From: Trichosphaerium sp. ATCC 40318
Lineage: Eukaryota > Protista > Tubulinea
DNA: 64,000 nucleotides
Direction of reading: 5' to 3'
Assembly (NCBI GenBank): GCA_038496445.1
Contig: JALMLS010000536.1
Span: 62,001 to 126,000 of the forward strand
This document shows, one piece after another, positions 54,224 through 56,502 of this stretch. Both the position numbers and the translations under genes were made by a program. The notes beneath the pieces were generated by a model. The model was not told the origin of the DNA. It saw only the letters and a program-made list of their open reading frames with translations, and made no database searches. Within the stretch, counting starts at the first letter, position 1; every line of letters starts with the position of its first letter.

Positions 54224-54324
54224 GGTATATTCAAGCGCGTAATGGCGTTTACAGAAGCAGAAAAAACAAGACTGACTGCACGCTTTTTTAACACCTCGCT
54301 AAGCCACCACTGTCAAATGGGTGC

Positions 54325-56258
54325 ATGATTAAAAAGGTAAGGGACCGAGTTAAACGCTTACAAGGAATAACATCTCAACATCCTCGTACGCTCAAAATAT
54401 TACGCCAAAACATTATACTTAGCATCATTATAGCGGTAATACGAAAAACATTTCCAAAAAACCAATGGGCTACTGTAGAAAATCAACGAGTATTTCTGGA
54501 CACAGCACTAGCACCGTATCTACCCGTTAAAACGCTTGATGATTGGTACAGGGTGAAACAAACCGATTTTACAAAACTAGATGGCTTGACGCTTTTAAAA
54601 AAGTGCGTGGTGCTGTCTGAAACGCTTTTCGGCGTTATCTAGAAACACCTGATGATAACAACGTTTTTGACCGCGCTTTCTAGGTACAATGGCTCTGTAC
54701 ACCAGTTAGTTCAATCATTGTACCCAGAGCATGATTGGGTACCATGGCAGTTCGTGTACGCCGATTTTTTTTTTGAAATGACCTGTCAAATGACGTACGT
54801 CATTTTGACACATTGTAGAAATACACCACAAGGATTTTGGCAAAGTTTATCTAACCAAAGAGCCTTTTGTGATAACGAACTAAGACAACGCCTTAATTTA
54901 ACGCGTATGGAGGATATGTATAAAGTCACAGCGATGGATATAAAAAACAATGGCGGTGTGTCATTGCTGTCAATGTATGGCAACTCAGTGCAAGCACTTC
55001 TAAGAGCTGTTTATCCTGAACATAATTGGATTGCTTGGAAGTTCAAGTACGCTAGAATCGTTGATCTCCTGGCGTTAATCATCAACTTAGAAAGTGTGAG
55101 CAACTTTACTGGCAAAAACCTCGTAATGTAAAAGAGTTCTTGTCGTGTACGTCTCTGAGACATTTATTCTTTTGGGGTTTTTTTTTGACATTTATGTTTT
55201 TGGTCCTTTAGATGTTGAAAATAAGCTTAATATATCCACTCCTGAAGAGTGGTTTCATGTAACTGGTGCGGATATCGCTAGACATGGTGGTAGTGGTTTA
55301 GTTTCACAGTATCCTGAGTGCCTACGCATATTACATCCAACATATCCATGGCATGCTTTATACAAATCGAAAGAAAGAAAACCAGCCATAAAGTACTTTA
55401 ATCTCCAACTCATAATCAAGTTTAACACTAATAGAAAAGAGAGAGGGTACTGGCAAAAGGATGAGAATATTCTTACATTTCTGAAAGGTACAACTGATAA
55501 AGACTCTTTTTTTAGAGTTGACATTTTTATGTTTTAAAGGCGCTGCTGCTAAGCTGAATATCCGAGTACCTGAGGATTGGTATCGCGTGTCAAAAAACCA
55601 ACTGAAAGAATTGGGTGGCTCTTCTGTTATAAGAGTTTTTCCAGGGTGTCTGAAGCTTTTGTATCCAACAATCGATATAGAACAAGCTCACTTTCAATTC
55701 AACGAAAAAAAAGCAATTCAAAGGTATTTATTTACTGTTTTTGATGAGGCTCTCGTCATCTCACAAGTACCTAGGATGCTCCGAGTAGCGATAAAGAGTA
55801 TATTCCCAGACCTAGAAACGTTTGAAGAGTACACTTTGACGCGTATTTTGCGATCAAGGACACCGATAAGCGTTGATATTTATGTACCGAGTCTTGGTAT
55901 TGCTATTGAGTATCAAGGTACGTCAAGAATTGGAGCTTGCATCCTGACTCTGACAAAAAAGGCGAACACCATTACAAAGATACTTTGGGTACCTACGGAC
56001 CTGCGAGATTACAGCGTTCACGAGATAAAACAAAGAGAGAAAAGTGTGAATCTGCAGGCACGTTTCAAGAGGGCATAAGTGGTATCTCAATATTTCTCTG
56101 TAGGTATAACGCTAGTGCCTATTCCATATTGGTGGAAAGGAGACGAAGACAGCGTTAGAGCAACAATCAAGCATTTTCGACCTGACATTCATGTTGACGT
56201 TCCAAAAGGCGCTAAACCGCTGTTAGATTATACCGCGCATGGCAGTGGAGTATCCTGA
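54325..56258 (+). CDS. Tandem ~70-aa repeat protein with a C-terminal Vsr/RAP-like PD-(D/E)XK nuclease domain
   Basis: Four repeats W..xxN.R.F....L....DWY.V.......GG..L......L..LYP...W; C-terminus VDIYVPSLGIAIEYQGEHHY...RDKTKREKC...GITLVPIPYWW. Confidence 0.85.
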
Positions 56259-56502
56259 GCCATTCTTATTCTTAAGAAAAAAACCTCATACACTTGTAAA
56301 TATAAGCACAGCGGCATAGGGTCCCATAAAAATGGGAGGTTGGTTGTATTTATCTCCATGTTTTAGAGTTTTTCTTATGAATTTCGTTAAAGCTATACTG
56401 TACTTAGCGAGCGAACTAGAGCAAGGAGAAAATGAAACATAGTGTTTTTTTAAGCCTCAATATTATTTGTGTCCTCACAGCAAACAAGTGCTCAGAGGAA
56501 GT

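Follow-up and report, generated by a model that had tools for sequence, protein, structure and literature searches.

Within a 64,000-nucleotide stretch of DNA from Trichosphaerium sp. ATCC 40318 (contig JALMLS010000536.1, positions 62,001 to 126,000 of the forward strand; hereafter the window), one spliced gene on the plus strand encodes a protein in which four abutting Trp-rich helical modules of about 75 residues precede a C-terminal nuclease domain of the Vsr type. The module has no characterized function and is in no curated family (Pfam, NCBIfam). The protein may well act in DNA-directed cleavage, probably in mitochondria; we favor this reading tentatively, on the basis of the conserved active site, the phage relatives of the nuclease, the fusion partners of related proteins, and their N termini. 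Structural models and most searches rest on exon 3 (54819-55046), which is one complete repeat unit, and on the closest homolog, P0088 (467 amino acids [aa], 37% identity). All positions below are those of the window.

An expressed, intron-rich nuclear gene

Unspliced, 54325-56258 is not a single open reading frame (ORF); a clean open frame emerges once introns are removed. The gene was modeled by hand splicing at short GT-AG introns, followed by comparison with transcript contigs from two public runs of the same organism (X1 and X2). The resulting model has the following features:

54325..56258, plus strand: coding region, 11 exons, 465 aa; spliced open frame, with every joint seen in transcript contigs
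54325-54385, 54434-54602, 54684-54755, 54819-55046, 55091-55146, 55212-55392, 55435-55487, 55540-55723, 55775-55917, 55962-56057, 56104-56258, plus strand: exons
54284..56354, plus strand: transcribed region; mRNA 5' end near 54284, 3' end at least 56354
54325..54444, plus strand: N-terminal extension of 24 aa, basic (7 K/R, 1 D/E; isoelectric point [pI] 12), containing a 48-nt intron; possible mitochondrial presequence

All nine introns predicted by hand were confirmed by transcript contigs from the two runs, and a tenth (54386-54433; 48 nt, in-frame, GT-AG) was found in one contig. Intron lengths range from 42 to 81 nt across all ten. The last intron, 56058-56103, is of the GC-AG type: the transcript removes exactly 46 nt, and homologs read uninterrupted across the junction (A-G-I-T-L). 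An alternative GT donor at 56079 was dropped because both the transcript joint and the homologs favor GC-AG. A contig from run X2 begins at 54284 with a template-switch oligonucleotide as a loose end, which places the 5' end of the mRNA near that position, and contigs extend to 56321 and 56354. The spliced protein has a pI of 9.5.

Run X2 also carries a second allele or strain with 13 differences, all transitions and 11 of them synonymous, an excess as expected under purifying selection. No mobile-element features were seen around the gene, whose neighbors are ordinary genes, and the 64-kb window holds no second copy of the family. With ten spliceosomal introns, ordinary neighbors and mostly synonymous allelic differences, the locus behaves as a host gene, and we conclude that it is a real, expressed, intron-rich nuclear gene.

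A Vsr-clade nuclease domain with conserved active-site residues

The original prediction had proposed a C-terminal PD-(D/E)XK fold of the Vsr/DUF559/RAP type, and both fold comparison and an alignment of relatives bear this out. The spacing it had given for the first motif, D-x(9)-E, is one residue short; the window reads D-x(10)-E-x-Q-G-x-H-H. The features of the domain are as follows:

55722..56255, plus strand: Vsr-like PD-(D/E)XK endonuclease domain, aa 335-465; family C-terminal hidden Markov model (HMM) E 3e-46; introns 55724-55774, 55918-55961 and 56058-56103 (GC-AG)
55875..55972, plus strand: active-site motif D369-x10-E380-Y-Q382-G-x-x-H386; codons 55875-55877, 55908-55910, 55914-55916 and 55970-55972
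56024..56135, plus strand: second conserved block, R-D404-x-x-K407 (56024-56035) and P-Y-W-W (56124-56135), mapped from the alignment of 90 relatives

Across these 90 diverse relatives the D, G, H and second D are invariant, and conservation reaches 90% or more for Q, P, E, Y, K, P, W and W. The window keeps all conserved residues (D369, E380-Y-Q382-G, H386, D404, K407 and P-Y-W-W), a pattern that argues for retained catalysis. It also speaks against a non-cleaving role, in which the array would make protein-protein contacts or form a structural part (e.g., ribosome-bound) and the nuclease fold would serve for binding only. Some mitoribosomal RAP proteins are structural, with 9i05, 9g6k and 6z1p among the fold matches, and 73 of 247 relatives are without the nuclease domain, though many of these are fragments. 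We regard such a scaffold as highly unlikely.

The C-terminal part of the P0088 model runs alpha-beta-beta-beta-alpha-beta-alpha. Residues 346-467 of the model gave the following fold matches (Z score):

T. gondii mitoribosomal RAP protein: 10.5 (second RAP protein, 9.4)
Vsr: 10.3
I-Bth0305I homing endonuclease (PDB 3r3p): 9.8
FASTKD4 RAP: 9.3
NGO0050: 9.1
Tetrahymena mL104: 7.8

A survey of PD-(D/E)XK enzymes assigns Vsr, DUF559 and DUF2726 to a single clade that also includes 1cw0, 3hrl and 3r3p (PMC3424549). By profile, Pfam RAP (PF08373) matched 0 of 90 C-terminal domains at E ≤0.1 and nothing in whole-protein scans, and neither DUF559 nor Vsr found a match among the 90 relatives. The sole Pfam family touched was DUF2726 (PF10881; 36 of 90 at E ≤0.1, one of them above the cut-off at 26.6 versus 24.7 bits). 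Matches to phage families were stronger: the nuclease domains of relatives hit PHROG 559 (HNH endonuclease, E 6e-18), 9084 (homing endonuclease, 3e-14), 7140 (intron-encoded nuclease, 1.5e-11) and 3339 (homing endonuclease, 4e-9). Exon 8 of the window gene alone, in the numbering that makes 54819-55046 exon 3, matched phrog_559 at E 0.0057, with a second PHROG match at E 0.044. More than 500 IMG/VR loci encode the nuclease domain, in repeat-less ORFs of 80-451 aa that fall into the same PHROG families. Judged from these matches, the domain is a nuclease of the Vsr clade, closest in sequence to phage DNA endonucleases; the affinity to RAP that had been suggested for it does not extend to sequence, where it groups with phage homing and intron-encoded DNA endonucleases instead.

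Several of the phage loci (IMG/VR contigs L031, L041, L023, L015, L028 and L082) carry ORFs of 170-190 aa in which a hydrophobic, membrane-helix-like N terminus is joined to the nuclease domain, an odd pairing for an endonuclease.

The repeat is a five-helix module, not a hairpin

A repeat profile built from the window units and refined on relatives recovered the four predicted Trp-rich repeats, with independent E values (i-E) from 1e-18 to 4e-32:

54445..54753, plus strand: repeat 1, aa 25-100; family HMM i-E 2.2e-28; split by the phase-2 intron 54603-54683
54754..55044, plus strand: repeat 2, aa 101-176; family HMM i-E 4.4e-32; phase-2 intron 54756-54818 at its start
55045..55366, plus strand: repeat 3, aa 177-247; i-E 7.2e-20; boundary intron 55047-55090 (phase 2) and internal intron 55147-55211 (phase 1, after FLS)
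55388..55694, plus strand: repeat 4, aa 255-325; i-E 1e-18; boundary intron 55393-55434 (phase 2) and internal intron 55488-55539 (phase 1, after FLK)

In the family consensus an aromatic and hydrophobic core is invariant (W8, F17, L21, L25, W33-Y34, G45-G46, L49-L50, Y53, Y65-P66, W70, W73 and F75), and polar residues N13-Q14-R15, D32 and K74 are kept in every unit. The array is basic (pI 9.4). The AlphaFold model of exon 3 has one long and four short helices (predicted local distance difference test [pLDDT] 95.8), and the P0088 model shows the same five helices per unit, without linkers (pLDDT 92.8; predicted template modeling score 0.70, which suggests that the units pack rigidly). The module is a 75-aa five-helix domain and not a two-helix hairpin of the TALE/PPR type, and in this differs from the TALE/PPR-like reader originally inferred.

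Single-exon scans of the window gene gave no Pfam, NCBIfam or PHROG match apart from the weak PHROG matches of exon 8, and neither exon 8 nor the repeat or nuclease profile had a significant sequence match in the PDB. Against solved structures, a single repeat gave Foldseek E values above 4 and a best VIA-align Z of 4.0 over 48,161 chains. The fold matches obtained (TetR helix-turn-helix, Slx4 CCD and SAM; Z ≤4.0) were judged to be common small-helical arrangements. Searches of predicted-structure libraries returned family members and then bacterial DUF4046 models. The repeat superposed on a Bacillota DUF4046 cluster model with a template modeling (TM) score of 0.75 over 70 residues (root mean square deviation 2.3) and on A0A559JGK5 (DUF4046; AlphaFold DB) with TM 0.69. 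DUF4046 (PF13255) has no known function, and no paper on it was found in the literature searched. Its HMM found no match in the window repeats; it touched 1 of 71 repeats from relatives (E 0.046), and the best whole relative reached 21.7 bits against a cut-off of 22.8. On these models, the repeat represents a distant branch of the DUF4046 fold, one without a name, found in eukaryotes and viruses.

Other resemblances were fainter. Models of the helix-hairpin-helix (HhH) part of NAD-dependent ligase (LigA) and of RadC_N reached only TM 0.45-0.48, and SAM domains TM ≤0.38 with E above 4; the repeats had no HHH match in Pfam, and the HhH likeness did not appear in the PDB searches. SAM-like and HhH-like readings were left as unsupported leads. 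A Myb_Rap1 match in multi-repeat proteins was not accepted, being a sum of sub-threshold stretches. A degenerate DNA pattern for Y-P-E-H-x-W-x-x-W-K-F hit one bacterial locus, a chance match with no ORF.

A decodable recognition code had also been proposed. In its fullest form, the modules would read sequence one by one, a few nucleotides each through variable surface positions. Protist mitochondria and giant viruses would then possess naturally programmable nucleases guided by an array, with the logic of TALE nucleases and a decipherable code, and slime-mold members might select mitochondrial genomes or plasmids for cutting. Column entropy over 1,064 aligned repeats showed general surface variation, with no small hypervariable set and no isolated pair in a constant frame. 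Repeats within one protein are strongly diverged (cross-repeat alignment scores are well below half of self-scores). A PPR- or PUF-like code is compatible with this but finds no support in these data. We consider array-guided reading of this kind distinctly unlikely.

Introns at the unit boundaries

Phase-2 introns lie at all four unit boundaries (repeat 1/repeat 2, repeat 2/repeat 3, repeat 3/repeat 4 and repeat 4/nuclease). The intron at the repeat 3/repeat 4 boundary is displaced by one codon, while the other two repeat boundaries share an identical codon position. Apart from this shift, the recurrent boundary introns and the phase-1 introns after FLx in repeats 3 and 4, both noted previously from the genomic sequence, are all seen in transcripts. 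Whether they record duplication of symmetric exon units has a divided answer. Repeats 3 and 4 are reciprocal best matches and have in common a 4-residue deletion, an extra internal intron and, within that intron, the stretch TTGACATTT..ATGTTTT (z 3.7 versus shuffles); a fair reading of these shared features is duplication of a two-exon, intron-bearing unit, for this pair only. At the other boundaries duplication and parallel intron gain are indistinguishable.

A homolog from another eukaryote (GCA_025450795.1, L002:7935-10591) has eight repeats and the nuclease domain. Its introns recur after Y-P-E-Y (column 68) in three repeats, a position that differs from that of the recurring introns in the window gene.

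A very large family in protists and a giant virus

When exon 3 was searched against 1.84 billion cluster representatives (50% identity), 4,847 proteins were found at E ≤1e-3 and 567 at E ≤1e-30, the best with up to 25 matched stretches. Among 247 relatives that were fetched, repeat number varied from 2 to 25 per protein (median, 6), the variation that the repeat HMM had been proposed to look for. The coupling of array to nuclease is the prevailing architecture: 174 of the 247 have the nuclease domain, nearly always at the extreme C terminus. In P0122, P0051, P0004 and P0209 the nuclease lies mid-protein with repeats after it, or two nuclease domains are present; these look like tandem gene fusions or read-through of neighboring paralogs.

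Named sources include Heterolobosea sp. BB2, Physarum polycephalum, Cavostelium apophysatum, Copromyxa protea and MMETSP protists. Ten proteins looked up included at least eight distinct paralogs of C. apophysatum, and two long member-bearing contigs were eukaryotic judging by their neighbor genes. AlphaFold DB clusters add dictyostelids, planctomycetes and a viral-metagenome protein, as well as proteins from archaea and bacteria under the names DUF559, DUF4046 or restriction endonuclease. The giant-virus metagenome-assembled genome (MAG) GVMAG-M-3300023184-81 (IMG/VR, L003:9708-11717) encodes a 670-aa ORF with six repeats, one of them with an insert. This ORF ends in a different Vsr-like domain, of the F-E-Y-H-G-D-F-W-H-G-N type, which the family nuclease HMM does not detect. 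The family is very large; its members come from Amoebozoa, Heterolobosea and marine protists, and a giant-virus MAG carries one as well. The literature searched contained no description of the module, the family size or its spread through protists and giant viruses.

A proposed role in DNA-directed cleavage, probably in mitochondria

We propose that the four modules, as a basic array, would hold the protein on nucleic acid while the Vsr-like C-terminal domain (D, E-x-Q, H and D-x-x-K kept) would nick or cut, most likely DNA. The basic N terminus would direct import into mitochondria, where the role may be genome maintenance or site-directed cleavage. The DNA substrate, the nucleic acid binding of the array and the mitochondrial location are all things that we infer, from several lines of comparison.

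For the substrate, the fusion partners of relatives are informative. The order array-nuclease-ligase, with an ATP-dependent DNA ligase, occurs in Cavostelium P0106 and in the MMETSP protist P0223; Cavostelium P0232 joins array and nuclease to Pol X fingers and palm (E 5e-26 and 9e-16); and in Physarum P0231 a truncated ligase is followed by seven repeats. From this last protein, which has ligase and array but no nuclease, DNA binding would seem to reside in the array itself. Ligase and Pol X fusions, homology to phage endonucleases and the giant-virus homolog together favor DNA over RNA, and the presence of a nuclease, a gap-filling polymerase and a ligase on one type of array suggests nick-fill-seal chemistry. 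Cavostelium has the ligase and Pol X fusions side by side.

For the location, a targeting rule was applied to relatives whose sequence opens with M and carries 24 or more residues ahead of the first repeat: the first 25 positions had to contain ≥4 basic and ≤1 acidic residues. By this crude charge heuristic, which has no computed background, 40 of 90 eligible relatives qualified; many resemble textbook presequences, and the ligase and Pol X fusions likewise have presequence-like N termini. The short basic N terminus of the window protein, together with the clearer presequence-like ones of relatives, suggests mitochondrial targeting. Of the organellar RNA processing envisaged in the original prediction, the organellar half is therefore plausible; the RNA half is not favored, as the fusions point to DNA. 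None of the results has a bearing on the role in defense that was named there as an alternative.

Several observations weigh against DNA-directed cleavage in mitochondria, beginning with the crudeness of that charge rule. The N terminus of the window protein could equally be a nuclear signal. Fusions to DNA enzymes were seen in just 4 of 247 relatives, in transcriptome assemblies, where chimeras can arise. In the PDB fold searches the repeat had no significant likeness to any known DNA-binding fold, and the nuclease fold fits RAP domains (mitoribosomal and FASTKD4; Z 10.5 and 9.3) as well as it fits Vsr. Some relatives are automatically named "RAP domain-containing" in UniProt, and many paralogs per species with variable arrays are the pattern of an organellar RNA-binding family.

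The last three points belong to an account in which the protein is a RAP-like organellar RNA factor: the array would bind specific mitochondrial transcripts and the Vsr-like domain would cleave or merely hold RNA, doing the job of FASTK, OPR-RAP and HPR-RAP proteins in lineages that seem to have few canonical RAP proteins. The window protein shares their layout, a helical array and then a C-terminal Vsr-like domain; the top fold matches include the T. gondii, FASTKD4 and Tetrahymena mL104 RAP-type structures listed above; whole-chain Foldseek lists FASTKD2/3/4 and plant RAP proteins; and presequence-like N termini would suit such a factor. A census found Amoebozoa and Excavata to be poor in RAP proteins (PMC8190603), which would leave room for a substitute. 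Nothing was found in the literature searched on RAP with Physarum, or under the UniProt accessions of relatives. However, none of the 90 members matches Pfam RAP, and the homology by sequence is to phage DNA endonucleases. The repeats do not superpose on FAST or HPR arrays, the alignment being limited to residues 346-467; the enzymes fused to members of the family are DNA ligase and Pol X, and there are relatives in viruses. We see this as a possible, if rather doubtful, explanation.

A DNA substrate could also be met outside organelles. The protein would then be a DNA-targeting nuclease of homing type, domesticated or still selfish, or would act in the nucleus or cytoplasm as a safeguard against viruses and mobile DNA, with long target sites conferred by the array. 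Homology of the nuclease to homing and intron-encoded endonucleases, the giant-virus homolog and the basic N terminus, read as a nuclear signal, are in keeping with this. The characters of a host gene set out above (ten spliceosomal introns, ordinary neighbors, mostly synonymous allelic differences) and the lack of mobile-element features nearby speak against it, as do the N termini of many relatives, which are presequence-like and not nuclear-signal-like. This explanation we hold to be unlikely, and DNA-directed cleavage in mitochondria remains the reading that we tentatively prefer.

Transcript variants and splice sites

Removal of the 48-nt intron at 54386-54433, seen in the single contig that covers it, takes out 16 mostly hydrophobic N-terminal residues. 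Forms of 465 and 481 aa with different N-terminal signals may coexist. One further feature was read from the sequence in the 5' untranslated region (UTR) of the transcript:

54317..54328, plus strand: upstream ORF of three codons (ATG GGT GCA TGA; M-G-A-stop), within the transcript 5' UTR

The TGA of this upstream ORF shares bases with the start codon of the main frame (ATGA); such a layout can control translation through reinitiation. A contig of run X1 is unbroken over 55091-55392 and keeps the 65-nt phase-1 intron 55147-55211, which is spliced in run X2; retention would cause a frameshift downstream of repeat 2. Intron donors show an unusual preference, with GTAC in 7 of 10 (GTACG in five of these) and GCACG in one.

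Significance

A helical array coupled to a Vsr-like nuclease is a known design, found in FASTK/RAP proteins and in modular homing endonucleases; the module itself is without a curated family, a solved structure or a literature. If the array binds DNA or RNA, it would be a new class of tandem nucleic acid-binding scaffold. If the family is mitochondrial, it may make up in part for the reported scarcity of RAP proteins in Amoebozoa and Excavata. Another possibility is that it reveals a nick-fill-seal DNA repair set (nuclease, Pol X and ligase) on one binding array. Its clusters at 50% identity number in the thousands, a protein may contain as many as 25 modules, amoebozoan species have many paralogs each, and giant viruses have members as well; the family merits a name and a profile.

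Comparison with known systems

The closest architectural parallels are the FASTK, OPR-RAP and HPR-RAP proteins (PF08373), which likewise place a C-terminal Vsr-like domain after a helical array, have several paralogs and are, as the window family probably is, organellar. The C-terminal alpha-beta-beta-beta-alpha-beta fold is held in common (Z 9.3-10.5). The arrays differ, with hairpin repeats of 35-40 aa there and a 75-aa five-helix module here that does not superpose on them, and the window family has no RAP HMM match and has fusion partners and sequence relatives that point to DNA.

Phage homing and intron-encoded endonucleases (PHROG 559, 9084, 7140 and 3339; I-Bth0305I) resemble the window protein in the catalytic domain, by sequence (E to 6e-18) and by fold (Z 9.8), and in joining a modular binding part to a nuclease. 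Unlike the window protein they have no repeats, and they are intron- or intein-borne or free-standing mobile ORFs, whereas the window gene is a spliced, expressed nuclear gene. With the Vsr/DUF559/DUF2726 clade at large the protein shares the fold (Vsr Z 10.3, NGO0050 Z 9.1) and the conserved D and E-x-Q-G-x-x-H; it departs from that clade in its E-Y-Q-G-x-x-H with downstream R-D-x-x-K and P-Y-W-W, in being eukaryotic and in its fusion to a repeat array. Bacterial DUF4046 (PF13255) offers the same small five-helix fold (TM 0.75 and 0.69) and faint HMM matches in some relatives, but none in the window repeats.

TALE, PUF and PPR arrays, and TALE-nuclease fusions, are alike in having tandem modules with an effector and a repeat number that varies (here among paralogs, 2-25). 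TALE and PPR units are two-helix and 33-35 aa long, against five helices and 75 aa here, and the strong divergence of repeats within a protein, with no hypervariable pair on a constant background, is unlike TALE.

Two further proteins offer parallels of design. Plant MSH1, a MutS protein with a GIY-YIG homing-type nuclease, is nuclear encoded, organelle targeted and engaged in DNA surveillance, with a borrowed homing-endonuclease domain. Topoisomerase V carries a long array of small helical (HhH)2 modules, binders of the DNA backbone, on a DNA enzyme. We know of no sequence or fold relation of either to the window protein. In its design, the window protein would work like a modular homing endonuclease or a RAP protein, while it is not a RAP protein by profile and not a TALE or PPR protein by the structure of its unit.

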